A stretch of DNA of 63,586 nt, the filler included, from Lenisia limosa (lineage: Eukaryota > Protista > Breviatea): NCBI GenBank assembly GCA_001655205.1. It is 11 parts of 11 records of this genome, joined end to end, with 100 filler letters (N's around TTAATTAATTAA, not from the genome) between each part and the next. Parts side by side here need not be neighbours in the genome. Positions count along the whole stretch, not along the records: positions 32,040 to 46,139 come from LPNZ01011623.1; 10 more parts are not named here. One strand, written 5' to 3'. Positions 1,585-45,600 of the stretch are shown here, one piece after another (positions within the stretch are counted from its first letter, which is position 1; every line of letters starts with the position of its first letter). A program made the translations under genes and the position numbers. The notes beneath the pieces are model-generated. The model did no database searches and was not told the origin of the DNA. It saw nothing but the letters and a program-made list of their open reading frames with translations.

Positions 1585-1866
1585 TATTGTGAAGCCATTT
1601 CGGTCTACTGCGTCTACTAACCACTTCTACCAATAACACTTAATATTTTAGTACGTAAATCACAAGCTCATTTTCATTTTCAAAAATCCCGAAGGCAAGT
1701 ATTACAAATGTAACTAATGTATAAATGTTTCTGTCACTTGTGTTCTTCGACAGACTCGTCTTATTAACTGTTTTATTAATACTGTTAAACTGATAACGTC
1801 GGTTTAATTGTTTTAATCATTGTAAATTGAAGCCAAGCAAAAACACAGTTATTGGAGTGATAAGGC

Positions 1867-4800: not shown

Positions 4801-7763
4801 AAGGAAATACTATTACACACCCATTATAATGTTTAGCCTGGGCTGATTCTCTCCTATCGAAAACTGGTCAAACTGGGATCAACTGGAATCAGTGGATTGA
4901 CTGACGTGGGTTTGTCGGAAATAGCAAATAGTGAACTATTCTTGTGGGTTCTTTTGTCACATTTATAATATTGTCTGAAATCTGGCTTTTATTTGATTTC
5001 ACCTAAATCTATGTCTGTTTCTGCTCTTTTACTGTGCAATAGTACGCAATGCCTATCACGACGACTAACTACCTACCTGGTACCAAACGGACAGCCATCG
5101 TCTCAAATGTTTCACAACTTGACTCACAAGGCCAAGGTAGGCATGTGAAATTCAAGACCAGGACATATTACCACAATTTCATGATGTATTTAAAGACTGT
5201 TTGTAAAACAAACAGTTTCCAAATAGAGATACACGAGTAGTTAGAGTGAGTTGGATGACTGCTGGGATGATTTGATCTGTTAAATTATTATCATAAGAGG
5301 ATCCCAAGCTTTTACATTACAAATTATCTCTATTTATATAAGGAATAGTTTTAAAGCCCTTGACTGCGCCAATTCCAAATTATGTCATACTCATTCAGAT
5401 TTACGCGTTCTGCGGCCTATTTGGAGCCAGGTGAATTGTGCAACTGGAAGATTTGCATGTAACTCCCCCAACCTCCAAAATGTTCCCAAGTATGTTATAC
5501 CCATAGTCCATTTCAGGAGTGGACTGGAATTGTGAGAATTTTGACTGTATCAAAATTTTGGGGAAACCAAGTTGCATACACTCTCCCCGATTTATAGTTG
5601 TATACAGTTTATGTGACATATTTAATAGTGCAAAGAGAAAAATTAGGTGTTGTCATTGACCCTTTTCTCTATTTAACATTTAGATCTGAACAAAAAGTGG
5701 AGGAAACAGTCGAGGTTGAGAACAATGGCAATGAGGGTAAGCACCAAATATTGTTACTTTTTATGTTTTTAATCAATGTGGTTTTTACATACTGTAGACT
5801 TATTTGAAGACCTCTTGGGAGGGGAGAAGGAAGAAAAATCACAACCATGTATGATTCTTGGCGTGGTCACTCAATTAATTCAGTACAAATGTTCTTGTTA
5901 ATTGTGGTGTAAAATCTTCACAAAATTCATTATTTATCCAAATTATATCCTCCATTGTTAATGTTATTTCAGGTTAGCAAAGAAAAATCACAATTCATTT
6001 AATAATCCTAAGTTTGCAGAATATTTTTTACACCACTAGGCCATACGCAGTCATTTGCTGTGAGTGTGCGAAGTGCCTTTATTGCACATCACAACGAAGT
6101 CTTTATTTCTGCTGATTACGAAACCTTAGAAGTAGGTAGCATAAGAATATCTACTATTTTAACTGAAAATAATAACAAATGTAACATGTACATTTAAATA
6201 TTATATCATATTATTCTTAATTCCCCAACAGTTCCGTATTTTGGCGCAACTAGGCCAAGACCCCGATTTGACCAAATTGATTTTGAAAGGAGGCGACATC
6301 CACAGGTATGTCACTCCTGGTGTTCCATGGAATATTTTTTTGAATTGAATTTCTACTTGACTAAATGTAATAATAGATAACTTTTTGAATGAGAACACAA
6401 AAAGTATCAGAAGTCTAACATTTGAAATAACTATTCAACAATTAATCTTTAGACGTATTGTTGCCGCATGGCGCCGAATCGACGAAAACTCTGTAACTTC
6501 CACACAAAGAGAACAAGGTTTGGTGATGTTAGAAATCGCTTGTTATTGGAAAAAGAATAAATAGTTATGTCTTTCATATCATATTTAGCAAATCAATTGA
6601 ATTACTATCAATATACATGTTTCACAATGATGCTTTCCAGGCAAAAGACTGCTCTACTCTATCATGTACGGAACCGGGTCAGCCAATTTGGGGAGACAGT
6701 TAGGTATCTCACAAAACAAGGCCCAGGCATTTATGACCGCTTTTCTTCATCGATTCCAGGGTGGGGAGTATAATCTGAAACGGGAGAGTCTTATTTCAGA
6801 GTTTTTATGATTTATTGTGTTTTTATACAACAAGGCCATACTATTCCGATATATAGCAACACTAATAATTCAAGGAATTTCAAACTTCATCAAAATGACG
6901 GTTGATAGAGTCAAAAAGGTAGAATATTTGAGTTATTTGTTATCGGGGATTCTTTCAATACGACTGATTTGATGTCTTAAGTCTTCCCTGACATTCACTC
7001 TTAGAACGGTTGTGTCCACTCAGCTCTTCTCAACCGACCTCGACACCTCAATTGGGTAGCAGCATCGCCCGCGGGAAAGGCATATTATGAGCGTCAGGCT
7101 ACTAATACCGTAATTCAAGGCACCGCTGCTGACGTGTCAAAGTTGGAGGTGTCTTAAATCCCAAATAAAGATGATTTCTGACAATTTGACCAAATTGAAT
7201 TGGCAGCTTGAATGTACATACCAATTACTTCATAGACTTGCTATGTTGAACATTGAAAACGCCCGAAGATGTGACCCCATTCTCTCCAAAGGACAGCTGA
7301 TCGTTAATTTACATGACGGTGGGGAATACAGGTTTCATTACAATGAAATAGTAATAATACAACTGTCTTATGATATTCTTATGATACTACATTACATTCT
7401 CATTACCTAGAGCTGATGTGGGTTTGTCCAAAGGTTCACGCTGTCCAATTCGCAAAGAAGGCAAAGTTTATCATGGTTGGTATCATTCTTTTAAGCCCAT
7501 TACGATGACATTTGAATGGTTTAACAATTCAGGAAAACGTGTGTCATGAATTCAGTTGGACAATTCCCCTTCCTGTGAAGGTGCGACAATATCCATTAAA
7601 CCATGCTATGATGATTTTAAATGACAATGTAACTTGTGATTAGTTTGAAAACTTGTTCATACACATTTCATGAACACAGCTTAATCACTCATGCCTGCAG
7701 GTGTACGCTGGGAAGAAGTGGAGTGCAATGGAGGAAATCACTGCCTCACTTTCAGTTAATTAA
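1867..7763 (+). CDS. Family A DNA polymerase without helicase domain (Pol nu / Pol theta polymerase-domain-like), multi-exon
   Basis: Exons give STNEDILMQLSTKHDL, PGLILSYRKL, CATGRFACNSPNLQNVP, motif A SAFIAHHNEVFISADYETLE|FRILAQL, motif B REQ|GKRLLYSIMYG, ERQATNTVIQGTAADV, motif C LIVNLHD|ELMWV and C-terminal LPVK|VYAGKKW...SVN* (TAA 7761-7763). The ATG at 1867 is inferred. Confidence 0.9.
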
Positions 7764-7891
7764 GTCGTCTAGTTTGAGGATAAATACAAGCTATTGATTT
7801 TGAAAACAAATGGTGATGGGTCTTTCAGATCGAGAAATTTAATGACAAAAAGGATGCATCCTAAATGTAGTGAAATAGTCATAAATAAAAA

Positions 7892-10800
7892 TTAGGGATC
7901 GGAAGCAAGGATTGCATTAAGGGCTTCCATGGTGTTATTGTTGTATTCATAGAGCTGTGCAGCAATCTGAAAGGTCAATTTGGAGCACTAGTGATAAACG
8001 GAATTCGAAAAATCAATATTTAGCTGCAAATGTGTGGATAACATGAGATTTGTAACCACAAATATGACAACTTCAGTTGTCAACGTCACATCTGAAATCA
8101 TGGTGTCACTTTACCACAGTATTACATAAAAGGAAGTTAAAATAGTTATGTAAATAATAAGAAGAATATAACTATTTACCCATCATACAGTGTCATCGTC
8201 AACATTTAGTCCCATGGTCTTGATGGTGTTGAAGTTTTCCCTCATTTCCTGGGGCAAGTTGTCCAAGAATGAGGTGCCGTTTTGGGTGGCTACCTAAGAA
8301 CGTTGATTGGTTATCTTAAGATTTTCAAAACCAGTTTAACACCCCATCATACAGTAGGTTGTTGCATTTGGGCGAGAAGCCTCCGTTGGTTCTCTAACTG
8401 AACTCTCCTTTGTTCTGCCTCTTCAGCTCTTAGTTTGTGTTCTTCTTGTTGCCTATTGAAATCGTCTTCTTGCTGCTTGTTTGATACAGTGGGGAGAGGC
8501 GACTGGTGCGTATCAAAGAGAGACTCAATAGGGGCATCATAGCCCGGGCTATGTGGTTAAACAATAGGAAGAAAGAGTGGAAAGGACAGTGATGATAAAT
8601 AAAATGAAAACAAGGGAGAAACAGTTTGATTGGCAATTAAATGTGACCAGATCTGATTTGTGCAATAAAGAGCAAAATAAACAAAGTGTACAAATCACCC
8701 ACAGAACGCCGCCCTTGAGTGTCACATTTTCATCTGAGGCAAGCGATGGGAGATTGACAGCTGGCAAAGTGTTGTCTTCCTCTGCCTCCATCTCGCCATC
8801 CGAAGGTTCATAGTTGTCATAGTCGCTCTCAGAGTTGGGAACGATGGAAGAGGCTTCGCTTTGAGGAGAAATCGAACGTGGATTTTGTTCTAGGCTTGCT
8901 GGAGGGTAAATAAGAGTCTTTGAAATTGACCTTTGATGCAGATCTCCAACTTTGTAAAATGTGTACAGTATTATACCCCCCCCCCCCACAATTATGAAAT
9001 AAGATTATACGAGGTAGTATCTCACCAGAGGGGTTGCCGGGATTGGGATCAGTGAGATGCTTGTTAACGGAAGAGCTCATTTCACTCATCTATAATGCCA
9101 ATTAGATCACTTTTGCTCCTAAAAAAGAAACAATAAACAACTACCAAACATATATATTATGACCATTCATATATTTACCATTTACCGAGAAAACTAAAAA
9201 GCATACTCAAAATTATTTGAGGTGAGCATAAATTTGAAGCACCAAAAGCTGGCTGAACAATGGATTCAGTTAGATTCCAAAATACTAAATTATGGACAAG
9301 TCTGATAAAAAATATAACAGCTCAAAAACAAAACAAAAAACCATTCACCATTGAATAAGTACTTTCTGACAATGGATGGCTATGGCGGATGTCATTTTCT
9401 GGGGTGTGAGGAACGTTGCATTTGGGGATAGTGGATCAAAATAACTCTGCCAAATGTTTACAAGGTGAAAAATACGGTGTTGATTGAAAACTTAATAGCC
9501 ACACTGTTGTTTGACAAAGACGAGCTACCACCAACCATCTGAACCGGGTGATACCGCCATTTCCACATCGCTGTCAACCATAGTAGGAGGGATGGAGGCT
9601 TGAGGTTTACTTCGAAGAACTAAAACTTCTCCAGAGGTGAGACCGGCTGTGGAATTTTGGGCCTCTTGTTCTTCAGAGTTTTGCGCTGATATTTGTTGTT
9701 GAGCTGGGGATTGTTGTTGAACAGGCGTTTGTTGTTGAGCTGGAGATTGTTGTTGAGCTGAAGATTGTTGTTGAGCTGGGGATTGTTGCTGAACAGGCGT
9801 TTGTTGTTGAGCTGGAGATTGTTGTTGAGCTGGGGATTGTTGTTGAACAGGAGTTTGTTGTTGATTAACTTGGTGATGCACTTGGTGTTGTTCATGCATA
9901 ATGGGGGGCTGGGATTTATGTACCTTTACAGGGGAATTTTGTTGTTTAGCAGGGGATTGCTGCTTAGATTGAGGCTGACCAACTTGCTGCTGCTGAACAC
10001 CTTGCTGTATAGGTTGTTGTTGCTGATACTGGGCAAACTGCTGAGGAGGGGTCTGTTGACGCTCTTGAACGATGGAAATCTGTTGTGTTTGGCTCGGAGA
10101 CATATCTGGCCTGGGGTCCGCATACAGTTCATCGGCTTCATCATCTTCTGCAATATGTGATATGTACTATCAAATTAGAACATGATTATATTATGTTGAC
10201 TAGATACTTCCCACCAAATACATCCCCTATCTTAAAAATTCTTGAGAAAATCTCAGCAATTATTAATCGAGATGTTCAAGGTCTTTGTTTTTCAGATGAC
10301 CTACCTGTGAGAATTGGGGTGTTTGGAGCCTCATCAATCATCTCTTCGTTAACAGTGTCCGAAATGCCAGCAACATGGAAAGTGGCAACGGGGGTGGGTT
10401 GCTGGGGTTGCTGAAGGGTGAAGCATGGGGATTTGCACGTTTTTTGAGAATAGAAGATGAATAAACTAACATTTTAATGCCATCAACAAAAAAATAATTG
10501 AAACATAACTTTTCTCAAAAAAAAGGAAACTGAAAAATAATGCAGTTTCATATGATATATTAAGGTCAGTCATACTATGTTCATAACTTCGGGTGAAGCG
10601 TTGGCTCTCTTGGTGGTTCCGGAGACCACGGGTTGGGGAGCCTGGGGGTGTGGGGTGAAATGGGGTGTCTGAGGAAAGAGTGAGAGGGTTTGGAGTGAGA
10701 GTTGAGTGTGGCTGAAGAAGGGTTCCGAGGGATGGTATTGGAGAGTTAGTGCCAGAAGATGGAACGAAAGAAATGGGTAGTTATGGGTGAGGGCTTAGTC

Positions 10801-12779
10801 CGAATTACATAAACAATTCAGCCCTTCTTCCAGATATCGATATGTCTTACTTATTTTAGAATTGTCCTTACACAGACAGTCAGCTCACCGAACGTTTGCC
10901 TCTTTCGTTGCTCAGAGTCGGCTGATTGGATGTGGGCAACAAGTAATCCTCCATGACGGCGATAGGCGAACCAGGACGACATTGGACCTGGGGAAAAATG
11001 GGAAAATTTATGAAACAAAAAAAGCCCAATCAACTCTGTTGGCTGACAACACACAAAGGTNNNNNNNNNNNNNNNNNNNNNNNNNNNNNNNNNNNNNNNN
11101 NNNNNNNNNNNNNNNNNNNNNNNNNNACATAGTTATGTTATATATGTATGTGCAACTGGATCCGATATGCCCGGGAAGAGGAGTAAAATCATGAAAATTG
11201 TTTTAACAAATAATTCGCATTAAATTTAACGATTTTACATTAAACCCTAGCCAACATCAAGGGGAAGCGGGTCGCCAAAGAAGCAACTCAGTCTCTAAAT
11301 AAAAAATTAGCTTGAAAATAACGAAATATCAAAATATACTACAAAATATAAAGTATTACTGAAGTACTGGGAAAAGTGTTTGTATTATAAGTATTATTAC
11401 ATCCGTTAAGAGATAGGCAACCTTGTCAAAGAGTCTAAAAACAGCCATGGTGTGACCGGGCTGGGAGAGGGTCGTGAACCTGATCGAAATTTGCTAAGTT
11501 GTCAGCATTAAAACGTGAAACAATCAAGAAAAGTTTTGTAAATGACAGTAGAGATCACTGAAAAATCAAATAAAAGTAGAAAAACTTGACAGAGATCAAT
11601 GACAAGAAAATGTTGCACTCATTATCAGGAAAACAGTATAATCTGGTTAGGTCTGATTTCCCTATTATAAAGGAAGTCCATATCGACGGGAAATGTATTA
11701 TTATCTTATCAAGGGATCCTCCCATGCATACAAGCTGCTGGCCTGGTTTTGCGGCTTTGACTGCGCAGGAGAAGGCCACAATACTGGTTCCTGGAAAATA
11801 AAAAGAAGAAGATATGGAAATGAGAAAAATAAAAAGGTGGACCTGCGAAAAGGCTATTCATTCCCGCACACCACCAATTCCCATATTTAACCCCTCTCCC
11901 TTCTCCTCCTATTACAACCCTGCTCCAACAATACCATCGAAAAACTCCAAATTTACCCTCTCTCCTTCTCTCACCCCCCCCCCTCCAACCANNNNNNNNN
12001 NNNNNNNNNNNNNNNNNNNNNNNNNNNNNNNNNNNNNNNNNNNNNNNNNNNNNNNNNNNNNNNNNNNNNNTTGTATGTTTCCATTGTTCTTGACCATCCA
12101 TGTTTTCTCACAACTGGTGTTGAGCGGGACAACTGCATTGTCGCTCATGTTGACCTGATAAATATAATGCAGGGGAAGAGTGGGAGACGAGGTATTACAA
12201 AGTTTCCTTGTTAAAGGGTTCTTATTGTTATCTCAGATTAAAGCTGGACGACAAAACAGTAAGCAAAGCGGGAGTTAATCCCAGCAAACGACAAGAAGTG
12301 TTTACAAATAGTTCATAGGCATCATGTTCTCCAAATATAAGAGGCCTCTACGCAAGATCTCGCCAAATACATGTCCAAGAAGTTTGCAACTCAGCTGATT
12401 TGGGCGTTGGCGGAACATTGAGCCAAGAGCTTTCAGTTTGAAGAATTCTGGCAGGTAACTAGTGTTTTTGCTCCAAAAATAAACATCACAGTTTCTCAAA
12501 AACAGCATATTATAAATTGCAAGAAATATTCTTGCTCTCGAAAAAGATGCAACCGATACTTGCCAACGTACGCTGGGTTGGAGGCGGAGTCTGTCTGTAG
12601 GACAGCTGGGTGTTCATTCCAACGTCAATGGCAGGGCCTGTCAGGTTACTATAAAACAAGCAAAATACAGCTGAAATAGGTTAGGGTACAACCTTCCCCA
12701 GTTTAGCTGATCAGAAACAAAAACAATTATATGTGTAAATAGAAACAAAGAAACGTTATAGGTTGGTGTTGGAAACCGT
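7892..12779 (-). CDS. NBR1-like protein (FW domain, long S/P/Q-rich linker, C-terminal UBA); 5' end cut by contig edge
   Basis: FW-like exons: VNMSDNAVVPLNTSCEKTWMVKNNGNIQ (about 12071-12155), AVKAAKPGQQ and FTTLSQPGHTMAVFRL. UBA-like end: FNTIKTMGLNVDDDT|IAAQLYEYNNNTMEALNAILASDP* (TAA 7894-7892). Confidence 0.6.
9684..9863 (-). repeat. Coding minisatellite, 10 x 18 nt (QQQSPA/QQQTPV), in the NBR1-like gene
   Basis: ORF 9525-10103(-), residues 81-140: QQQTPV QQQSPA QQQSPA QQQTPV QQQSPA QQQSSA QQQSPA QQQTPV QQQSPA QQQISA. Confidence 0.95.
10988..11060 (-). repeat. Family B copy ending at acceptor AG (10989-10988)
   Basis: GTGTTGTCAGCCAACAGAGTTGATTGGGCTTTTTTTGTTTCATAAATTTTCCCATTTTTCCCCAG followed by an exon. 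Confidence 0.8.
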
Positions 12780-32039: not shown

Positions 32040-35000
32040 CGGGATAAAGGTGAATACTCAATAAAGGGGGAGCACTTATCCACTCACAACATCAAGGCTT
32101 GAAAGATACGTGGCGCTAGTGATGGGGCTGTTTTCGCCCTCCAAGCCAAAACGACAGAGAATGGAGCTTCCGGCGGCGGCGTTGTCCAGTCCCGACCCGG
32201 ACACACGCACAACGGACCTGAAGCGTGACATTTTATTCTTTATTTTTTTAAAAAAAGTCGGAGGATCCTACCCTTCGGCGTCGAGCGGGACTGTTGTGGG
32301 GGTCACTGACTCAACCAGTGGCGTGTAGNNNNNNNNNNNNNNNNNNNNNNNNNNNNNNNNNNNNNNNNNNNNNNNNNNNNNNNNNNNNNNNNNNNNNNNN
32401 NNNNNNNNNNNNNNNNNNNNNNNNNNNNNNNNNNNNNNNNNNNNNNNNNNNNNNNNNNNNNNNNNNNNNNNNNNNNNNNNNNNNNNNNNNNNNNNNNNNN
32501 NNNNNNNNNNNNNNNNNNNNNNNNNNNNNNNNNNNNNNNNNNNNNNNNNNNNNNNNNNNNNNNNNNNNNNNNNNNNNNNNNNNTGATGCCCACGTCCATG
32601 TCCCCAGCGGTGGCCAGGGCAAGGATGGAACACGTCATGCTTCGCGTGTTGTTCTTGACACACGCCTCCGAAATCCGCAGAGAACCGGCGGTAAGATACA
32701 GCGACCCAGCGCTGGTTGTTAGCATGCGTGAGTACACGATAATCCCCTTTAACACCGTAACGTATGAAAGCCTACCCCCATAACAAGACGTATGAAAAGC
32801 CTACTCCCATAGCAAGACGTATGAAAGCCTACCCCGGGAAGTCGTCAGCTAGTGTGACTGCAACAGTGATTTGAGAGGAAATCTCAACAGCCTAGGGGGG
32901 GGGGGGNNNNNNNNNNNNNNNNNNNNNNNNNNNNNNNNNNNNNNNNNNNNNNNNNNNNNNNNNNNNNNNNNNNNNNNNNNNNNNNNNNNNNNNNNNNNNN
33001 NNNNNNNNNNNNNNNNNNNNNNNNNNNNNNNNNNNNNNNTTCAAAGCTTAAGAACTGACCAGCTCAATTGACAAGAAAGATAGAAAGAGAGAAAGAGAAA
33101 GAGAGAAAGAGAGACCAACCTTGGGCGTAATTGACAAAATGCCGATAGGAGTCCCAGAGGCCGTGCATTCGGATGAGCCACAGCTTGAGGGTCAGATGTG
33201 CACTTATGTGTTAGTAATTTACCCACCTGAAGCCAGTTTGACATGAGGAGGAACAGGTCGTTTCACAGGTTGACGTGATGCCGTTACAGGAGTATCCCAA
33301 ACAGGACGAAAGAGGACTGTTCGGTTAGTATGGGTTTGAAAACAAAATGAAAATCTCAGCAAGATTGATAGTCCCCCGCACTTAGCCAGACACGCTCCAG
33401 AGACACAGAAGGATGTGGCGAGAGCGTCGATACCATCCAAAGTGCCTGCAATATAAGGATATGATGATGCGACAAACCGCAGGAGGTCGAGCCACACGAT
33501 ATGCCGTCACTTTCGGGCACACACTCTCCGGAGGCGCAGGTGTTGCATTCCTGAGGGTGAATAGCAATTATCAATACTGCCACCCCGAATCCACTTTATC
33601 TCAAGCATTACAGTGATCATTACCCGCGCACCAAGCAGTCAGACGCACAACAAACTCCAGCAATGCAGAAACCGGAGGCACAGACCGAGGCATCTGTGCA
33701 GTTTACGCCGTTATCCTGGGGGGCGGGTGAGCTATTTGATGTACTATTGAATAAGACAAAACTCAAAAGACGAGAGGGCAGAAGTCAACAAAGAGAAGCA
33801 CACACCTTTTTATCCGGGGTGCAAGCCCCGACAGTACAGTTCTCGAAGGTGATCGGCATCAAATCTTCATCACACTTGTAAGTTCTAAGGTCATTAGATT
33901 CAGAACACCCCTCATGCGACATAGTCAACACTCCCCCCATACGACACAGGAGTTCCATCGTTCCGTACGCAGGAAAGTTCACGAGTACGCTCAATCGATT
34001 CGCCGCACACCGGACATGACGTCCAAGGGCCCTTTGCCCAGATGTACACCACAGCTGGCTGGTCAGGATGGAATGAGTCATTGTGGGGGCTTCACTTCGG
34101 TTCGAAAGCTTTTTCGATAAATCCTCGAAAACTATCGATATTTTACTGGTCATTCTTGGACCAAAGTGAAGCCCTAGTCATTGTGGTTCGATCACGACTA
34201 TAAATGGATAGCACCCAAAGAGGCTCACGTTGGCAGTCGACAGTGGCGTTAAAGGCGCCATTCTCTTGGCAGGACAGAAGAGTAGTGTCCTCATCCGCGC
34301 CGCCGGTGCTGAAGCCTAAAGGATAAGCATGCTTAATAAACATCGATAGTTCATATCACATTCTTGAGGGTGACTAAAATCCCAACCCGGCTCACCCGAG
34401 TTGCATGTTACAGTGCACGTGGAATTAGGCGCGATGTTGTCACAGTTGTTGTGGCTATTGAGGAATGTCGGTTTAATGCATTGTAGTGCTGGAGAGGTAA
34501 GAGATAATCGGAAATCACACTTTCTTTCATTTGAAACAAAGACACACATAAGAATGGCTTAGGGGTGCGCAGTGGTACCACCATGACATGATAAATATTC
34601 AAGAAAAGAGCCCTCCCACATGTGCATGTTGGTAGCGCCTCGACATCCCATTCGCCGCTCGAGTGACAGAGGATCGAAGCAGTCGTGCTGTGGATAAGAA
34701 CCTGACACACATAGTCTTGGTGAATTAATCAACTCCCCCCCCCCCCACTCTAGGGAGCCAGAGATGACGTGTCCCTCGTGGCACGTGACAAGGCAAGAGT
34801 CCGGCGCCGTGGTACCGTTGCAGTTCGTCAGATCTGCGTTGGCAATGCTGGAGATGACTGGACACTCCGGTGGCGCAACAACTATAGAATTAACAGCTAT
34901 GGAGCCTCTGGTGTTGCATTGATGAAGCCTTAAGAGGACTATGTCACCAGTGTTGACATAGTACCATATGAACGAACTTATGATATGTGGACCACTATCA

Positions 35001-38000
35001 TCCTAAATAGCCTACCAGCAGGACAGGATGATGCGGGTGTTGCCCACAATCCGGTGTCCATACACGCAATTGTGATGTTGGAAGAGTCTTGCGTGCACGT
35101 GTAGAGACATTGCGTAGTGTGTGCCCCTCCTGCGCACCCTGAAGACTACAGCGTAAACAAGCATACAGACAACCAACCATTTGAGTGCCGTATTGGATCT
35201 CGGCAGCCTTTGTACCTGTTAACGTTAATTGGGTCGAAGAAGTACACAGTAATATGTGATCGTTAATTGAAAGAAGGACACAGTAATATGCTATCATAAT
35301 TGGGTCAAAGAAGGACAGACGCATACAGTCCGGGCAAGCTTGAGTGTTACAGTCGCTGGTAGTGAGGGGTTTCGCTCCAGCCAGCTCAAGGGTGCAGACC
35401 GAATCGAGTTGAGAGACAAGGCCTGAAGAAGTAAGAATCACTCCAACTTGAATAGTAAAGTTAATGAGAGGAGTAAGGAGTGTTTTATGAGCTAATTATG
35501 TGTTATACAGCTTAACCATCATCCCCCCCTCCCCACCACTGACACACTCCACGGTCCGGGTCTGAGTTCCGCCGCCGCACGAGACAGAACACTCCGAGAA
35601 GGACGACACCTTCCATGCCGGGCAGATGTCGGTGTTACATGTGCCAACTGCCGACGGCTTCGTTGTCTCGGCCTTAAGTTCGCATTCGGACACGCCGGTT
35701 TCGGTGCCGTCTTGCGTGCACGTCACCTTCATGGTCAAATGAGTCCAAGAAAATGGGTCAAAACAAATCTTCCTAGTCTCACTGTGCGTGTTTGAGATCC
35801 GCCTCCACAATCCTCATCGCAGGCACCCCAGCCTCCAGTCTATATGGTTAGCATTTGATAAAGCTAGATTGCTGCATAGAACGCGACAAGACATACCACC
35901 CAGATGGGACAGTTTGCAGCGTTACAAGTTTGGGAAGTGGCAGGCTTGGTGTCGTTGCACATGCTCTCCGGGTAGGGCGTGGAGTTGAGTTCGCACGTGA
36001 CTGAGCGCGTACTGACGCCACCACCACAAAGTTCGCTGCAGGTGGTCCATGTTGAGTTCTGGAGCATGAATCAAGTCTACTCTTGGCACCATAGTACTTG
36101 GTCCCTTCACACTCACAGTCCATGACGGGCACGCGGAATAGTCGGAACACGCCTGTGTAGTTGCAGGTTTGGTCAGAGCATCGCAGAGAGAATCGTCAGC
36201 CTGGGGAGTCAAAATTGGAAAATTTATGAAACAAAAAAAGCCCAAAATAATCTCTGTTAACACACGAGGGTTGAGAACAACAAAACAAACAAAGTCCAGG
36301 GGTGATAAGCTTGACAGGGCTGAAACAAAGCATGATGATAGGCCTGAACATCTAACTGCCCACCAGAGTGCTGAGACTCGACCAACACGGCACGGGTCGT
36401 GATTCTACTCCGACGCCGCAAGTCGTGTTGCAAGCCCCCCAAGAGCCTAGACCGTCACAAAGCGATGGCATAACGTGATCCATAATCCCCCCCTCCCCGC
36501 GCACCAGGAAGCCAGTCGTAGGAGCACGCACCTCCCGTGCAAGGTTGCGTGGTGTTAGGCGCCGATGAGGGACACGTGGCAGTGGTACCGTCAGGATTGT
36601 AGCACGTCACGGTCCGGGTTTGAACGCCGGCTGCCTCACAATCAGATACGCAACTGCCGAAAGCTCCCAGGGTCCTGGGGGGGGCGTTATGCGAATTTAT
36701 GAATATAATAAAAACCAAACTATCGACTCTATTAGCACACGCAAGGCTTGAACAAAACAAAGCCAATCCCGTTTGCTGACCAGGTGATGCTGCTGAGGTC
36801 GGCATCAGCTGCCAAAATGCAAGCGCCGTTCTCACAAACTTCTCCACCGTCCGTGTTACAGACAAATCCATTTGGTGCTGTCTGGGCACATGAGAATNNN
36901 NNNNNNNNNNNNNNNNNNNNNNNNNNNNNNNNNNNNNNNNNNNNNNNNNNNNNNNNNNNNNNNNNNNNNNNNNNNNNNNNNNNNNNNNNNNNNNNNNNNN
37001 NNNNNNNNNNNNNNNNNNNNNNNNNNNNNNNNNNNNNNNNNNNNNNNNNNNNNNNNNNNNNNAAAAATCAACAGAGCAATCATTTCCACTGCAAAGCAAT
37101 ATCAAAAGTGACATAATCCCCCATACGCAGTGTAGCCTTTAACTTCGCAATAAAGGTCTTCGGATTTACATTTCCCCTGTAAAGTGAGACAACTCAAGGA
37201 AATGCAAACCACCAATCAACTCACTTGGTAGCATCTGCCAAGAGATCCGATGCCGTCACTGCATGCGGTTCCGGCCACTGCGTGCGACGCTAAAGGGTCA
37301 CTGACGCAACTGCATCCCCATGTTAAATACCAATAATACAGCATATCATATCCAATTCCAAAACAAATCTACACTCAACCACATCAACATATTAGATTAA
37401 TTTAGCCGAATTTTGGAAACGGCAACAAGTGTAATGACGTCCACATACGGGGGCAGTCGGACGAGACGCCGGAGCAGACATCATCGATATCGCATGGCGC
37501 GTGGATGGGGTCAGTTGACTTCGCATTGCAAACGTAGGAACTAAACCATCAAAAGGGTACTGAGCGGAGGCAAAAGCAGCGCGTTTGCAGTATAGCCAAC
37601 CTGGCTCGGAAGCTGCAGGTGTTGTCACAACAAGGTGCGGCCGAGCTGAAACGATAACCAATTGTCCTCCCAAACTTCCTGCAAAACAAGGCACTCCACA
37701 TACTCGCACTCTGCGCCAGCTTTGAGCAGGCAAGTGGCAGCAACACAGCAGTCCGTTGTGCAGCCTACCGGACCGCAGTCACATTCCTCCCCAAGACCTA
37801 CAAGAGTGATTGGGTTATTAGTTCAGCGATTTACAAGAAACAACTTTATCGATGACATTGTTATGAGTGCTTCACTTCTGTATGAAGAGAGTATTGAGCC
37901 TACTTTCATCAACAATACCGTCTCCACATGTTGGCAGCGAAGGGGTCGGTACTGCACAGTTAGCAAAGAAGTCAACAAGAATGGAGACGCCCCACGTACC

Positions 38001-40774
38001 GGTCCCGGTAACACAAGTAGCTCCACTTGACAGAGTGTTGTCCACTGCAGTCACACTTTCCGCCTTCCAAACCGTCTCGGCACTTCCGCTTGCCGACATA
38101 ATCTACAAGGGAATAAGCTGGGATGGTGGGACTAGGGTTTCACTTCGGTTCAAAAAAATCCAGTAAAATATCGATAGTTTTCGAGGATTTATCGTGAATT
38201 TCAGTTTTTTTCGAACAGTGAAGCCCTGAGTGGGACCGCCTCTCACATAGTTGGATTCGGCCACGTGCGAGAGCCCAAAATTATGGCCCATCTAGGGTGT
38301 GAGGACAGCAAACATGGCGATTTGTGGTGATAAGACATTAAGAGTCACCTCATGAGCGACAGTTGAACCAGCTGAGGCCGCAGAGCTCCCACTACGGTAC
38401 TGGTTCACACTGCACGACAGGGTCTTGCTACCATGTTAGTGGAACTGAGGGGCAAGATGATGTATATAGGGACATAGTTTATGATGGAACAAATGGCTCA
38501 CGTGGATTGGTCTGTGCACATGGTGTCCACCCAAGCTAAAATGTTAGTCATTCAGAAAACCTATTCTATCCTGGAACAGTGTACAAAGAGATGGATAGGC
38601 AACCTAAGCCGATGGTGCTCGAGCCGACGCAAACAGAATCCTCCACTGCACAGAAATCTCGTCCCCTGCAAAGTTAGTAAAACAGGAACAATCATCCACC
38701 CACGAGAGAAGGACGCTGTTGTCGTAGGTCTTCAGGTTGGCAGTCACAAGGATGGCTGAAAAGCTACAAATGGATAAGCAACTGGGATGAACGCATATTG
38801 AGTGAAACGAATATCACTAGAGCCCACTCGTTAAGGAGGTCGTTGCAACTATCTTCTTCACCATACGCGTCAACGGTGTATGGGTCTTCGTCTTGTATGT
38901 TAGAATTGCCAACCTTCAAAAATATGGGTAAATAGACCGATATAATTGTTTCATTTCACCGATGATTTCATTACTTATTTCGCCTACAGATGAAAGTTGC
39001 CATTTTGGATATGACAAGGTGAACAGTGTACGATGCAGCTGTTCTTCCCTAGAGTCTGAGAAGCCAAAAGCATCTTTCTGTCCTACCAACTATAATAGAC
39101 TAGCAAGCATGACTAGCTCTTACCTCATAAAGAGTGTTTGCTATATTCAAAGCATCTGTTGCAGTAGTGTGGGTATTGTCGCCAAATTCTGTATTGTGAG
39201 ATGCGAATGTAAAAGATTCTTTGGTGTTTTGAAAGCCTCACAAGGGCCTACGTTGGAACCTGCTAAAGTCATTGTAAACTTCAACCTCAACATAGCGATC
39301 GGTTGCTCGACGGTCACGACTGTCGACTGGCTCTGAACGGGTCACTGACCTTCCATGACCAACCATGTGGGATGATTTCGGAAGGCTCAGCTCGGAAGTG
39401 TTCAATGGTGTCGTGGTCCAAGGGGCACTGAAAGATAAACATTTTGTAAGATGCATACCCCATGTTCGGGCATTGCCGTGTCATCACTTCGAACCACCAC
39501 GTAGTCTTGAGCGTCCCTGCCATCTCTCTATATGGTCAGAAACTGGTGGCACAAATAAGGTGACAAAACCCTTGCCAACTTTCACGATTTCATCAGTAAC
39601 GCCATCGTGGTCGGCGAGATGGAGCGGCATAACGGCCAGATTCCGTCCCGGTAGTTGGAGCATTCCGTTAAGACCGTGGCAAAGTGAAACTGCGGCGATT
39701 CCATTGTTGGACTGTTGCATCAAATCCGATCTCCCAATATGTAAACCTGTTACAAAGTTCTTCAATAATCACCAATCTGAATGTAGATTTATTCAGTCCC
39801 CATACCCCAGAGACACGCCCCTTGTAGTAGCAGTTCTGTAGAGGCTCCGAGGGGCTCATTTCAATAACATCGCCATCCTCAGTGAAGGAGAGGTACGTTT
39901 CGCTGAAGTCAGCAGCAAAGAGCTTCGTGGGTTACAAACACTCAGTTTACTGATACAGATTTGCAACCATTCAAAAAAGTAAAATAGTGAAGATTTTAAA
40001 AATGCAATTTATGAAGCACTATTTGAATAAAGGTTAGAAGCTCAGCTTAACATACGTTGTCATTTCTTTCTAAGTCAAGCACAAAGTCCTAAACTTTTAG
40101 AAAAAGCAAACTCCATGTCCAATAAACGAACATAAGTGGCAGCAGTCGGTCCTCATAATTAGAATACACGAGACAGCATTCATAAAAGACGCAACAACAG
40201 AGCCACGTTGTGGGAGGAATAAATCGGATTTCAAAAGAATTTAAATTACTACGCTATCGCCCTTCATCCCACCTCTCCGAGGGCTGAAAAGGACAATCCA
40301 AGTTCTGAAACAGCGTAATCGCCAGCATCGCGGGCCTGCCGTCCCTGGTGATGGAAAGCAATGNNNNNNNNNNNNNNNNNNNNNNNNNNNNNNNNNNNNN
40401 NNNNNNNNNNNNNNNNNNNNNNNNNNNNNNNNNNNNNNNNNNNNNNNNNNNNNNNNNNNNNNNNNNNNNNNNNNNNNNNNNNNNNNNNNNNNNNNNNNNN
40501 NNNNNNNNNNNNNNNNNNNNNNNNNNNATACTACACAGTATAACAAATGTTATAAAACAAATATGATTCAAATCATTACTGAGTTGGGAAGATGGGAGTG
40601 GATGGATTCTGATGCTCACTCGCGAGATCTTAACGACATCGAATGTTACACCAAGGTCTTCTCGCCTCAGGACACTAGGACTGCATAGGGACACTTTAGA
40701 GGGTGAGAAAGATCATCGGAAGGCCTCTACTCACAGAATGTGAAGCTGACTATAAGGGCCAGCAAGGCCACCAT
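32040..40774 (-). CDS. Secreted reprolysin (M12B) metalloprotease: signal peptide, prodomain, catalytic domain, disintegrin, Cys-rich region, 6 TSP1 repeats, CCP-like modules, IPT/TIG-like domain; 3' truncated
   Basis: Signal peptide [14 protein letters not shown] (ATG 40774). Prodomain CYYKGRVSG and [13 protein letters not shown]. Furin-like [17 protein letters not shown]. Zn motif TVAHE|MGHNFGLSH (57-nt intron 38292-38348). Met-turn IMSAS. Disintegrin CGDGIVDE|..[51 protein letters not shown]1 repeats such as [27 protein letters not shown]-like [17 protein letters not shown]. Confidence 0.92.
34087..34174. mobile_element. MITE family A copy in an intron of the protease gene
   Basis: GGGCTTCACTTCGGTTCGAAAG...CCAAAGTGAAGCCC|ta. 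Confidence 0.8.
36201..36310 (-). repeat. Family B copy ending at the acceptor of a TSP1 exon
   Basis: CTGGACTTTGTTTGTTTTGTTGTTCTCAACCCTCGTGTGTTAACAGAGATTATTTTGGGCTTTTTTTGTTTCATAAATTTTCCAATTTTGACTCCCCAG|GCTGACGAT (ADD...). Confidence 0.85.
36675..36780 (-). repeat. Family B copy forming an entire 106-nt intron (diverged)
   Basis: ATCACCTG|GTCAGCAAACGGGATTGGCTTTGTTTTGTTCAAGCC...AGAGTCGATAGTTTGG...TTCATAAATT...CCCCAG|GACC splits the W codon of TSP1 repeat 1. Confidence 0.6.
38135..38226. mobile_element. MITE family A copy in the intron between the Zn-motif and Met-turn exons
   Basis: ta|GGGTTTCACTTCGGTTCAAAAAA...TTTTCGAACAGTGAAGCCC. Confidence 0.8.
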
Positions 40775-42442: not shown

Positions 42443-42668
42443 ACTGAAAAAGGGCTTGTTTGAAAACAATAAAACATTTTTGGGGATGGTCATCAAAAGT
42501 AATCAAATTTAATGGAGACCCACAACAGACAAACAAACCCCAGACACCAAACTTGCAACTATTAAACTATTAATTAATTACCTAACTAAAGTATTAAAAA
42601 GGAAAACAACCCCCGTATAACCATATACTTCACCACATTTGCACTATTTCCCCGGATCTTGGTATCCA

Positions 42669-45600
42669 ATGAAGGTATATGGCGTGTTTGGTACTATTTT
42701 AGCTCTTTTTGTTGGATTATTAAGTGTGGCAGTGGAGTCTACACCAGCAACGTAAGCGGGTCGGCAATTCTCTCTCTAAATATCATTATGATAAGATGTG
42801 CCTACAGTGCCTGGGAAGGCACCTCTCAGAAATAACCAAATAGTGTTGATACAGAAGGCCTTATTCAGCTTCTGTTGTCAGAAGCAACTGACCCACGAAA
42901 CGCAGTCTTGAAGGTGGGTTTTAGCTTTAGTGCTCCTGAAACTGAGATTTCACGTTTTAGGCAGAATTTGACTTGCTGAAAAATAGTATGTTGGTCCCTA
43001 GGAGTTATATTAATATAAAATTTGTTTTATTGCTTTGATAAGCAATGTCTGCTGTGACAATGTTTCGATCTTTATATGTAATTGATGTTTTATGCTTGAT
43101 TTACAGCTGTGTTTGACTGCGTAACACCATAGCGGTGGCCTGCTTAGATGCACCCGTTGCTCTTGGAGGACTTGGAGTCACTGTGACTTCTCGCACGAAA
43201 TTTGAGGACCGTACTGAAGCCGACATTGCTGTCAGTGGAAGTTGTGCTGCCGGTTATGAGCTTGTTATACCTTCGTCACGAATGACGTGTACAGCGACTC
43301 ATGGCTGGGTGGATGCCCCATATTGTGCCATCAGTATGGGGGGACTTTTTCTTGTTGATATCAAATTTTGTTTGAAACTTATTACTTTAGAAACATGTGA
43401 AAATTCTTTTGATTTTGGAGCGGAGTCTTCAAACTGCACGGCTGGTTTGTGGTTTGATTGAAAGGATCCGCGTTAATGTGATTCAGAAAATAATATATGT
43501 TATGATATAATACATGTATATTGCAATGTGGACAATATTAACAAAGGCTAACACTTCCAGGACAAACATCTGACTATGGATCTTTGTGTAGCCTCCAGTG
43601 TACGGGAATTTCAGTCGGAGATCCCATCGCATTTTGTGGAGACGCTGGTTGGGAGACCAATTTCAGATGTGGTGAGTAGTACTTGCCTCTTCTACTTATT
43701 TTTTCAACATGATTATGCGTCTTAACTTGCCTGAGACACCATGCTGAGCGAAATAACTAAAAACTCTGAAATATTCTTGTTAGTAGATAGATATCATATC
43801 ATATGATAATATAATATGTACATATGATATATTATAGCTATGTGTTGTATGATGATGTATTTTCAAGCGCCAATGTGACCATTTAGAGAGCTCAGTTATG
43901 ACCTGTGGAATATACAATTCAGGAAACCTTGGAGATGTGGGAAGGGGGTGGGGTGTCGATCAAACTTTCATTAATCTCCAAAATCCACCGTTAAACCAAA
44001 GAAAACCAAAGAGTTCATCTAGAATGAATAATCATATCAAAATTACCAATATCACATGAAAAAGGACTCAAAGAATAATATGGTATCGTCAATGATTTAG
44101 TGTTAGAGATGCGAAGAATCACCTTTGTAGCCTTCAGTAGTCAGCAATAAGGTCAACGGTGCAACCTTAGACCTGGCTTCAGTCTTTGGGACCAACGTCC
44201 TAATGGTTGAATCTGGATATACCCATTTCTGCGCTATTAACTCGGGTTAGTTGACCTGTTTGGACTCTAACACTAACTTTTTTTTAGCCAAAGACCTCAT
44301 CTGTGTTGGGAGCAATAACAATTATCAAATTGCAGACTCTGGAACAAGTAAGTTGCCGCCTTGTTTGTTTGAAGAAGGTATTACCGCTTGATAACTAACT
44401 ACTTATTATTCAGGTTCAGTTGCGACCACACCTTTCGTGTCGTCAGCCTTTGTGAGCTTACCCATTGATGACTTCCAAGGCGGGGACTACCATTACGCTG
44501 TGCTCTGTATGTGTCTTTTTATTTCTTGCTTTGTAATGGCAAGGGATGTGACATGTGAAATATACAGTAATAACAGTTCGAAGACATCTGCATCATCAAG
44601 GACTATTGATAAAATAGTAGTACTAGATGATATGTATTCTCAGGGCTCCTTGCAATGACATAATGTCACTTATGGCAAGTAAACTGAAAATAGTTGCACA
44701 ATATTTTGGCGATTTTATGTCATATGACTTCATCTAAAAATTAATATATCGTATTTAAGTTAATCTTCTTGGGGTGAGAAACTTAAAAACAGTATTATTT
44801 TAAATTTCAAGTCATAATACCTTCAGCTGCTGGCTCGATCTATATTTGGGGAAGAGGCGCAAATGGTCAGCAGCTTTCTGGCTCCATTAGCAAGGTCAAT
44901 ACGCCAACTCTTGTGGGTACTTGCACTTTGTCAGATTTGATGACTTCTTTGGCTTTATCAGCCCGTCATAACTGACATTATAGAGGGCTGTTGGTGGCAC
45001 TATTGTCAAGATGTACCTCCATGACTACACGACCATTGTTGAACTAGGTAGTCGCGCTGTCTTTTGTCAGGGAACTCCTCACATATTCTGTTGTAACGCC
45101 GGTAGATGACGGCACTTTTGTTGGTGGCGGTCATAATTCATATGCCTCACTGGGCCAGCCAACTGCAGCGCCAGACCACAAGCGCACCTTAGATGTTTCC
45201 TTTTCTGGGGTTGGTGGTGATCAAGCTATCCTTTCTGGGGTTGGTGGTGATCAAGCTATCATTTTCTGGGGTTGGTGGTGATCAAGCTTTGCTCAATTAC
45301 TGGTGTGATACACTTAAGGAAATAGATGGTCAACGGAATGTATAAAGGGCCTACAACAGACTAATACTTTTAGACTGGAAAGATAATTCATTATGAGGCA
45401 GGGCACGATGGAGGTGTACTCGTGACTGGTACGCGGTTTGTTTAGTGAATATCGGAGGCTTAGACAGCTTATCAAACTATGGGGATGGTTTTATAAGCTT
45501 TATTGCGATATTCAAGATGTCTGGTGAGGTAGCTAGGACTGTTTACTTTTCATTTGTAATAATCTACATCTAGACGAAGGAGAAGCATATGCGCAAACTG

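Follow-up and report, generated by a model that had tools for sequence, protein, structure and literature searches.

The gene at positions 32040 to 40774 of the window (the whole stretch of DNA that was analysed, 63,586 nucleotides in length) raises the question of whether the modules of two different protease branches can be carried by a single protein. Among the M12B proteases, two groups are treated as separate branches: the ADAMs, sheddases of the membrane that have a true disintegrin, and the ADAMTSs, matrix proteases that are secreted and have TSP1 repeats. A preliminary description of this locus had placed an M12B protease, a true disintegrin, TSP1 repeats, CCP-like units and an IPT/TIG-like domain in one chain. 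We consider it likely that the locus is one gene of 56 exons and that its 1,580-residue product is a type I membrane ADAM-like protease. The order of its domains is a signal peptide, an M12B-like prodomain, an RDRR site, a zinc motif, a Met-turn, a disintegrin, a Cys-rich region and five TSP1 repeats, which are followed by three CCP modules, a sixth TSP1 repeat, a second Cys-rich stretch, two Ig-like units, a Ser/Thr/Pro stalk, a transmembrane (TM) helix and an SH3 domain.

The gene, with all of its features, is encoded on the minus strand; its ATG is at 40774 and the edge of the piece at 32040. The 3′ end of the gene, which is missing from the window, is present on a public contig without N (ENA contig ERZ3820729 NODE_152, referred to as L001 here). 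L001 matches every block of the window with 100% identity and spans all four assembly gaps, and three assemblies agree with each other at 100% identity. The gene model was built on L001 (positions 1723–11454) and is very rich in introns, with 55 GT-AG introns of 32–269 nt. When spliced, its exons read through 1,580 codons in one frame, free of internal stops and closed by TAG.

L001 also supplies the true sizes and the content of the gaps (Table 1). For the gap at 36898–37062, the same 126 nt are found in a Logan DNA contig (Logan contigs being evidence of presence only), and the frames on the two sides of this gap are joined on L001 by the hidden exon (CGQKKC...YWGD). Two exons proposed early on beside the same gap, GNDCSVDF and FSCAQ, are gap artefacts and are intronic on L001. 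The content of the gap at 32329–32583 exactly explains 105 RNA letters that have no place on the window. The less certain parts of the model include the prodomain exons between 40620 and 39923, where an uncertain 28-residue exon is included, and the exon junction preceding the SH3 exon. A motif-perfect micro-exon was rejected because no GT-AG join connects it to LFAADF without an odd Cys-rich run. Separately, an inverted copy of the MITE-like element listed in Table 1 is found in an intron at about 38130–38195.

Table 1. Features of the gene and of the assembly, in window coordinates; true gap sizes are those on L001
Feature	Position	Strand	Details
Exon 1	40733..40774	-	ATG and hydrophobic signal peptide; donor GTAGAG uncertain
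Assembly gap 1	40364-40527		True size 129 nt; poly-C tract within intron 2; zero coding loss
Prodomain core	39622..39922	-	LFAADF...CYYKGRV...CHGLNG...MPL; M12B propeptide by motif, Pfam match weak
RDRR furin-type site	39307..39318	-	aa 203-206, immediately N-terminal to the catalytic domain
Catalytic domain	38001..39297	-	About 207 aa, 10 short exons, M12B/reprolysin-like
Zinc motif	38265..38354	-	A 57-nt GT-AG intron, 38292-38348, interrupts it after HE
Met-turn YIMS	starts at 38102	-	Read directly
Disintegrin	37450..37795	-	76 aa, 14 Cys, 3 exons
Cys-rich region 1	36816..37449	-	83 aa, 12 Cys; 67-nt exon wholly inside gap 36898-37062
Assembly gap	36898-37062		True size 126 nt; conceals an entire 67-nt coding exon
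TSP1 repeats 1-5, consecutive	35331..36782	-	Pfam on exon pieces
Three Sushi/CCP modules	34230..35330	-	Six Cys each, 2-3 exons each; splicing of module 1 least certain
MITE-like element, high-copy	34087..34180	.	Inside an intron, outside the protein
Sixth TSP1 repeat	33821..34043	-	Pfam on exon pieces
Second Cys-rich stretch	33156..33715	-	113 aa with about 27 Cys and a C..SG.C motif that recurs; unclassified; RNA-confirmed splicing from 33695 on
Ig-like unit 1	32584..33155	-	Exons 33183-33120, 32891-32833 and 32711-32584, continuing into gap 4; RNA-confirmed splicing
Assembly gap	32907-33039		True size 59 nt; intronic
Assembly gap 4	32329-32583		True size 138 nt; a 92-nt intron with 40 nt of exon before it and 6 nt after it
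Ig-like unit 2, start	32040..32328	-	Exons 32328-32272 and 32217-32088; the gene leaves the piece here

Most domains were assigned with Pfam. When exon pieces were searched one by one, matches were limited to the TSP1 repeats and to part of the disintegrin, since those from the prodomain, the catalytic domain, the CCP modules and the Ig-like units were too short, and Pfam was rerun on domain-size spliced pieces of 62–100 residues. In the N-terminal part of the protein, the signal peptide, the RDRR processing site, the zinc motif split by an intron and the Met-turn are all where the preliminary description had put them. The M12B prodomain that it had also named carries the motifs of this propeptide, but the spliced piece matches Pep_M12B_propep with an E-value of only 0.26, over the C-terminal half. 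The claim of a reprolysin protease is supported by the 75 residues around the zinc site, which match Reprolysin_3 above its cut-off (E 6.3e-6, 27.2 bits) and are also matched by Reprolysin_5, Reprolysin_2, Reprolysin_4 and Reprolysin, and by the motif itself (HExxHxxGxxH).

Judged by its sequence, the catalytic domain is divergent. The residue after the third His of the zinc motif is a Val where adamalysins have an Asp, the PDB matches of the domain are weak (E 0.02–0.06), and the preferred splice form has no clear cysteine switch; one candidate for the switch Cys (HGVC) enters the chain only when an alternative donor is chosen. Proteolytic activity is thus a prediction. The same divergence (HV instead of the HD of the family, the weak PDB similarity and the lack of a convincing switch in the preferred model) would suit a protein that has kept the protease fold and serves chiefly, or even exclusively, as a receptor for adhesion or signalling, like the catalytically dead ADAMs, with its TSP1, CCP and Ig-like modules binding ligands and its SH3 domain signalling, and it is true that binding modules make up most of the chain. 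We nevertheless think this unlikely, as nothing is lost from the three zinc-binding His residues, the catalytic Glu, the Gly or the Met-turn, and the furin-type site is located exactly at the border between the prodomain and the catalytic domain, as expected for an activatable zymogen.

In the protein understood as an ADAM-like protease, the catalytic domain is followed by a disintegrin that matches the Pfam Disintegrin family with 53.1 bits (E 5.6e-14) over positions 3–73 of 75. Its PDB matches are venom disintegrins, P-III snake venom metalloproteinases (SVMPs) and ADAM17 only, with no ADAMTS among them. The true ADAM-type disintegrin of the preliminary description therefore holds, by this score and by its 14 Cys residues, and so does the Cys-rich region that it had placed next. 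An 89-residue spliced query covering the latter matches neither ADAM_CR nor any other Pfam family at E-values up to 1, and the gene model shows no pattern of the EGF-like module that usually comes after ADAM_CR.

The array of five consecutive TSP1 repeats and a further, separate one is borne out by Pfam: on exon pieces the six units match TSP1_ADAMTS/TSP_1 with E-values from 9e-11 to 0.011, and the best model for these repeats is TSP1_ADAMTS (E down to 3.9e-11). Between the fifth and the sixth repeat, about three to four CCP-like units had been described, and three were found, with no fourth. Module 2, the one searched with Pfam, is a full-length Sushi domain (26.9 bits, cut-off 20.7, E 6.7e-6), modules 1 and 3 being assigned by the alignment of their Cys residues. 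In all three modules the six Cys residues are in register; each has an extra pair of Cys residues beyond the four of the framework, and modules 1 and 2 carry the conserved Trp before Cys4. Module 1 can be spliced with a 32-nt intron and strong donors or with a 39-nt intron and a weak donor, and both options yield a six-Cys module. Judged by its coordinates, the best PDB match of module 1 (E 0.004) falls at residues 1379–1412 of PAPP-A2, in the C-terminal region with the CCP modules. After the sixth TSP1 repeat, more Cys-rich sequence is present, as had been described.

The C-terminal part of the protein was completed from L001, where positions 10373–11454 contain the end of Ig-like unit 2, the Ser/Thr/Pro stalk, the TM helix and the SH3 domain. 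As cut at the edge of the piece, Ig-like unit 2 matches TIG with 14 bits against a cut-off of 20.9 (E 0.05). In its complete form it matches Anth_Ig (26.8 bits, cut-off 26.9, E 6.8e-6) in an alignment that covers 88 of the 102 profile positions; Anth_Ig presumably belongs to the same E-set clan as TIG. Ig-like unit 1 has no match to a Pfam family. The terminal modules thus appear to be E-set Ig-like domains closest to Anth_Ig, and of the IPT/TIG-like domain first proposed there remains a borderline Anth_Ig/TIG assignment for unit 2.

The preliminary description had called for a search of the missing 3′ end for a membrane anchor, and L001 does contain one. It is a single TM helix (residues 1467–1490, L001 10745–10816, Kyte–Doolittle 3.0), followed by RSKK and by a cytoplasmic tail of about 90 residues with an SH3 domain at its C-terminus. 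With its 63-nt intron read through, this domain scores above the cut-offs of SH3_9 (34.6 bits), SH3_2 (31.2 bits) and SH3_1 (25.7 bits), the best E-value being 1.7e-8. These additions overturn the view of the protein as an ADAMTS-like secreted enzyme: a TM helix with a cytoplasmic SH3 domain makes it a membrane-anchored, ADAM-like protein.

That all these domains belong to one gene is indicated in the last third of the gene by RNA and elsewhere by the structure of the gene itself. A poly(A) RNA contig (X2) is spliced exactly as predicted over exons 40–48, including the 32-nt intron at 33446–33477, and its next 30 letters, which encode IECTLPAVST, are exon 49 on L001. The RNA evidence for a single transcript covers exons 40–49 and starts at 33695, which is 20 nt inside exon 40. 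At its other end, the contig extends about 850 nt beyond the predicted stop, and this excess may represent either a long 3′ UTR or the transcript of a neighbouring gene that overlaps. Support for the link of the SH3 domain to the rest of the gene comes from the reading frame and from the length of this contig, rather than from a read-out of its sequence. Upstream, the last exon of the first Cys-rich region carries two nucleotides (TG) of the codon for the first Trp of TSP1 repeat 1, the third nucleotide of which (G) opens the next exon, and split codons join the borders between TSP1 repeat 5 and CCP module 1, between CCP module 3 and TSP1 repeat 6, and between TSP1 repeat 6 and the second Cys-rich stretch. 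As far as exon structure can show, the locus therefore appears to be one gene, in which the link from the protease to the TSP1 repeats would be made by border-spanning exons. The one-gene architecture of the preliminary description stands in its single frame and in the RNA splicing of exons 40–49, while its protease part is joined on the grounds of gene structure.

Splicing in the model could instead have fused two or three adjacent genes on the same strand (a protease–disintegrin gene, a TSP1/CCP gene and an Ig-like/TM/SH3 gene). The RNA coverage begins late enough to accommodate this, and many short introns were spliced manually, so that wrong joins are possible and some junctions are uncertain. 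Against it, the largest intron of 269 nt leaves no space for the terminator and the promoter of a second gene, no internal exon has a Met followed by a signal peptide, exons or split codons cross the domain borders, and the RNA contig begins inside exon 40, which has neither a Met nor a signal peptide and cannot be the initial exon of a gene. We consider such a fusion very improbable.

The product of this single gene is neither a canonical ADAM nor a canonical ADAMTS. With ADAMs (ADAM10/17, meltrins) and P-III SVMPs it shares the signal peptide, a putative prodomain and the furin site, the HExxHxxGxxH motif with its Met-turn, and the true 14-Cys disintegrin followed by a Cys-rich region; with ADAMs it also shares the type I membrane topology, in which a single TM helix separates the ectodomain from the cytoplasmic tail. 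Unlike in ADAMs, this Cys-rich region has no ADAM_CR match, there is no EGF-like module, and about 860 extra residues of ectodomain (TSP1 x6, CCP x3, the second Cys-rich stretch and Ig-like x2) precede the membrane. The tails of ADAMs bear proline-rich motifs that bind SH3 domains, whereas the tail here is itself an SH3 domain, which inverts the ADAM–SH3 relation.

With ADAMTSs the protein shares an M12B protease combined with a tandem TSP1 array. ADAMTSs are secreted and have an 8-Cys disintegrin-like module with the central TSP1 repeat right after it, then a Cys-rich region and a spacer. That the gene is an ordinary ADAMTS member from a metazoan genome, as its TSP1_ADAMTS scores and an order of prodomain, furin site and M12B domain common to ADAMTSs might imply, is extremely improbable given its 14-Cys ADAM-type disintegrin without ADAMTS matches in the PDB, the 83-residue Cys-rich region that stands between this disintegrin and the first TSP1 repeat, the lack of an ADAM_spacer1 match on any of the exon pieces searched with Pfam, and the membrane anchor and SH3 domain.

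Two other families share parts of this architecture. Like anthrax-toxin-receptor-type proteins, the protein has a membrane-proximal Ig-like module just before the TM helix, but it has no vWA domain and no ANTXR tail, its Anth_Ig score is 0.1 bit below the curated cut-off, and its first Ig-like unit matches no family. Like the pappalysins PAPP-A and PAPP-A2, it is a metzincin that joins a protease domain with CCP modules; these are M43 rather than M12B enzymes, however, and have no disintegrin, TSP1 repeat, TM helix or SH3 domain. To our knowledge, the domain order found here is new to the described ADAMs and ADAMTSs, and a literature search returned no description of this architecture.

Searches for close relatives gave little. 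Protein representatives searched with an Ig-like exon returned only the window's own 51-residue ORF and low-complexity repeat proteins, and no relative; the Pfam matches of these repeat proteins are spurious. Metagenome contigs scanned with the longest TSP1 exon gave generic TSP1 matches (37–76% identity over 21–60 residues), no close relative and no hint of a habitat.

The domain order suggests how the protein might work. Its signal peptide would direct it into the secretory pathway, and the cut of a furin-type convertase at RDRR would release the prodomain. The M12B metzincin site may then cleave extracellular or cell-surface proteins, with the disintegrin, TSP1, CCP and Ig-like modules forming a long binding stalk that would choose substrates or ligands, for which matrix, glycans and the surfaces of prey or of other cells are candidates. 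On the inner side of the membrane, the SH3 tail would link it to partners with proline-rich sequences in the cytoskeleton or in signalling. In functional terms, the protein is comparable to an ADAM that acts in shedding or adhesion and has acquired an ADAMTS-style TSP1 array.

In the literature, ADAMTSs are described as conserved throughout Metazoa (PMC3002383), and a table on six unicellular holozoans in an EST survey has rows named 'ADAMTS', 'Sushi' and 'Selectin' (PMC2346548). The preliminary description had conjectured that the host is probably a unicellular holozoan and that the protein is relevant to the origin of ADAMTS-like architectures. There is an outside chance that the host is not an animal, for example a unicellular relative of animals, and that the gene keeps or parallels an ancestral membrane-bound M12B protease with both a disintegrin and TSP1 repeats. 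If so, ADAMs and ADAMTSs would each have gained their architecture by reduction from such a form, and the signalling link between ADAMs and SH3 domains would once have been within a single polypeptide.

The locus provides an RNA-verified, clean case of spliceosomal introns down to 32 nt. For the M12B proteases, it means that the modules defining the ADAM and ADAMTS branches can coexist in one natural protein, which also adds CCP and Ig-like modules and an SH3 domain of its own, and that the cytoplasmic wiring can be reversed. In an animal host, for example a sponge or a reduced parasite, the protein would be a lineage-specific product of domain shuffling; if the host is a protist near the animal lineage, the gene would be relevant to the pre-animal assembly of extracellular proteolysis and adhesion.

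The preliminary description had proposed a protease/disintegrin/TSP1/CCP architecture, and a single frame of 1,580 codons together with its Pfam matches confirms and extends it (see table); the interpretation offered there is, overall, partly supported. The proposed M12B prodomain is recognizable by its motifs (CYYKG and CHGLNG...MPL), while Pep_M12B_propep matches its confidently spliced part weakly in Pfam (E 0.26). The RDRR site is present as claimed, the zinc motif HExxHxxGxxH (residues 366–376) is indeed split by a 57-nt intron, after HE, and the Met-turn reads YIMS. A piece of 75 residues around the zinc site matches Reprolysin_3 in Pfam above the cut-off (27.2 bits), and also Reprolysin_5, _2, _4 and Reprolysin. 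Its similarity to PDB entries is weak (E 0.02–0.06) and scattered over ADAM33, ADAMTS-5 and ADAM8, so this catalytic piece cannot be assigned to one subfamily; in the ESM Atlas the closest clusters, a lead only, are ADAM10-like and Reprolysin/Disintegrin fragments. The catalytic domain is divergent, with Val following the third His, and a candidate cysteine switch is included only with an alternative donor. Both points would suit a non-catalytic receptor, which we consider rather unlikely. We favor an active protease; judged from sequence, a furin-type site lies at the zymogen border and the metzincin zinc site is complete. The disintegrin is a true one, as had been claimed: its 34 PDB matches all fall on venom disintegrins, P-III SVMPs or ADAM17, with no ADAMTS among them. 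The Cys-rich region behind it is not matched by ADAM_CR in Pfam.

The part of the protein that follows carries five TSP1 repeats and a separate sixth, as described before, and their best Pfam model, searched with exon pieces, is TSP1_ADAMTS (E 3.9e-11 to 0.011). The CCP-like units, previously put at about three to four, are CCP modules and number three, with six Cys in register across all three aligned. Module 2, once spliced, matches Sushi over its full length (26.9 bits; cut-off 20.7), and in module 1 the second exon aligns with PAPP-A2 residues 1379–1412 (E 0.004), in the C-terminal region where PAPP-A2 has its CCP modules. Pfam searches gave no family match for exon pieces of the second Cys-rich stretch and no match for Ig-like unit 1. 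The unit formerly called IPT/TIG-like is Ig-like unit 2: its part up to the piece edge matches TIG weakly (E 0.05), and, completed from the longer ENA contig stretch L001, it matches Anth_Ig over 88 of 102 profile positions (E 6.8e-6; 26.8 bits, 0.1 bit below the cut-off of 26.9). As Anth_Ig and TIG are members of one Pfam clan, the safe description is “E-set Ig-like domain”. The recovered 3′ sequence also supplies a transmembrane helix.

Features of the locus and of the encoded protein (window positions unless marked L001 or residues)
Feature	Position	Strand	Remarks
ADAM-like gene	ATG 40774; frame leaves piece at 32040	-	all coding features on one strand
Gap 1	40364-40527 = L001 1970-2098		true length 129 nt; intronic poly-C tract
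Gap 2	36898-37062		true length 126 nt; holds complete 67-nt exon
Gap 3	32907-33039 = L001 9384-9442		true length 59 nt; intronic
Gap 4	32329-32583		true length 138 nt: 40 nt exon, 92-nt intron, 6 nt next exon
RNA (X2) contig exons	33695-33631, 33549-33477, 33444-33382, 33316-33227, 33183-33121, 32892-32833, 32711-32584, 32215-32088	-	RNA
32-nt GT-AG intron	33446-33477	-	RNA contig confirms
43-nt intron	33184-33226	-	RNA contig confirms
32-38-nt introns	35146-35177, 38666-38703; L001 10865-10897		prediction
MITE-like copies	34087-34180, ~38130-38195 (inverted)		both intronic
MITE-like copies	L001 14428-14490, 15984-16060, 16553-16651, 17066-17165, 17880-17978		
Neighbor gene, hydrophobic N-terminus	42621-42752	+	
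Neighbor gene, two CCP-like units	43117-43458, 43542-43676	+	first: weak Sushi, E 0.019
Neighbor gene, RCC1-like repeats	44250-45280	+	RCC1 E 0.021
Signal peptide	residues 1-14		
Furin-type site RDRR	residues 203-206		directly precedes RYVEVEV
Catalytic domain	residues 210-416		M12B
Disintegrin	residues 434-509		Pfam Disintegrin 53.1 bits, E 5.6e-14, positions 3-73/75
Cys-rich region 1	residues 510-592		
TSP1 repeats 1-5	residues 604-883		
CCP modules 1-3	residues 884-1067		
TSP1-6	residues 1072-1126		
Cys-rich stretch 2	residues 1132-1244		recurring C..SG.C motif
Ig-like unit 1	residues 1245-1333		
Ig-like unit 2	residues 1334-1433		
Ser/Thr/Pro stalk	between Ig-like unit 2 and helix		
Transmembrane helix	residues 1467-1490		mean Kyte-Doolittle 3.0, sole such peak in protein; RSKK next
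SH3 domain	residues 1526-1580		C-terminal; SH3_9, SH3_2, SH3_1 all above Pfam cut-offs

L001 comprises 20,156 nt of the 42.5-kb contig ERZ3820729 NODE_152, which was traced by looking up a 51-residue ORF of the window itself (P0003). It is free of N, and its identity to each block of the window is 100%. On it, 56 exons and 55 GT-AG introns (L001 1723–11454) give the one frame, with a single terminal stop. Gap 2 has the same 126-nt length in an assembled (Logan) DNA contig of run X1, and the frames flanking it connect because of the exon inside, without which there is no connection. The exon lengths derived from L001 sum exactly to the 105 letters of an RNA contig that have no place on the window. 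With the gaps bridged and the exon lengths matching the RNA, the window is continuous across this locus, but taken alone it cannot be read in frame. Gaps 1 and 3 coincide with long poly-C/CT tracts, and a G-rich run (GTGGGGAGGGGGGG) opens several introns; homopolymer tracts appear to have broken the scaffold assembly.

That RNA contig (2,181 nt) comes from X2, a poly(A) run labeled metatranscriptomic from the same study as the DNA run. It is spliced exactly as predicted, its coordinates differing from the model by 1–2 ambiguous boundary bases, and its 30 letters past 32088 encode IECTLPAVST, the next exon (L001 10373). Direct transcript evidence covers exons 40–49 of the proposed chain, and the other exons are joined by a structural argument; no Logan RNA contig lies over window 33700–38039, such contigs showing presence and not absence. 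It is very improbable that the chain combines two or more genes, as split codons cross domain borders (the codon of the first TSP1-1 Trp has 2 nt, TG, in the last exon of the Cys-rich region after the disintegrin, and other split codons join TSP1-5 to CCP-1, CCP-3 to TSP1-6 and TSP1-6 to the second Cys-rich stretch), no intron exceeds 269 nt, and exon 40, in which the RNA contig starts at 20 nt, has neither Met nor signal peptide. For these reasons we treat the chain outside exons 40–49, too, as a single gene. Beyond the piece edge the RNA contig extends 1,406 nt, of which the model needs 555 nt to reach its stop; the remaining ~850 nt (L001 11455–12300) are either a long 3′ UTR or an overlapping neighboring (convergent) transcript. 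An AATAAA lies ~110 nt downstream of the predicted stop, well inside this overhang, and a 108-residue ORF runs on the opposite strand within it (L001 11583–11906).

The introns of the model measure 32–269 nt (median 68, mostly 50–70 nt), and most have a CTAAC/CTGAC-like motif 5–9 nt upstream of the AG. The exons are very short (mean ~85 nt, G+C 45–55%), and introns interrupt the coding sequence ~11.6 times per kb. The extremely short introns, the strong branch-site motif adjoining the AG, the extreme intron density and a MITE-like element at a depth above 27,000 (~30 for unique sequence) characterize this genome without assigning it to a lineage, and the unicellular holozoan proposed earlier as its host is a guess. 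The runs date from 2016, and the contigs of the DNA run add up to ~71 Mb. The MITE-like element, ~100 nt long, occurs in at least seven copies in 20 kb, two of them inside introns of the gene; DNA-run word depth in bin 34040–34239, which holds one, is ~48,800 against ~30 for unique sequence. A second high-copy repeat, unrelated to it, lies in the intron at 36210–36300 (depth 27,000–34,000). The putative neighboring gene (window 42600–45300, + strand) is divergently oriented. Two stored ENA gene calls (L001 18238–18960, -, and 18978–19403, +) read through in-frame stops; they look as if a gene caller set for prokaryotes or an alternative code had made them, and are unusable as eukaryotic proteins.

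Compared with ADAMs, the protein has the catalytic motif, a true disintegrin and a membrane anchor, but lacks an ADAM_CR match and shows no EGF-like module. The tails of animal ADAMs carry proline-rich motifs and the SH3 domains sit in their partners, whereas here the relation is reversed, with SH3 in the protein's own tail. The TSP1 array is the only feature shared with ADAMTS: unlike those proteases, the protein is not secreted and lacks their 8-Cys disintegrin-like module with a central TSP1 right behind it; an ADAMTS spacer was not found in its exon pieces. Departing from ADAM in ADAM_CR and from ADAMTS in these features, it is filed in neither subfamily. We class it as an M12B protein of the adamalysin type whose domain order is not known from others: no described M12B protein is known to unite a Pfam-type disintegrin with TSP1, Sushi, a transmembrane helix and SH3. 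Its sequence features point to entry into the secretory pathway and anchoring in the membrane, with many modules of known extracellular binding types in a long row outside and a predicted intracellular SH3 domain. We infer that it works at the cell surface, like an ADAM, as an adhesion protein and a zinc protease of predicted activity; its TSP1/CCP/Ig stalk would select the substrates or ligands, and proline-rich proteins of the cortex or of signaling would be the partners of its SH3 domain.
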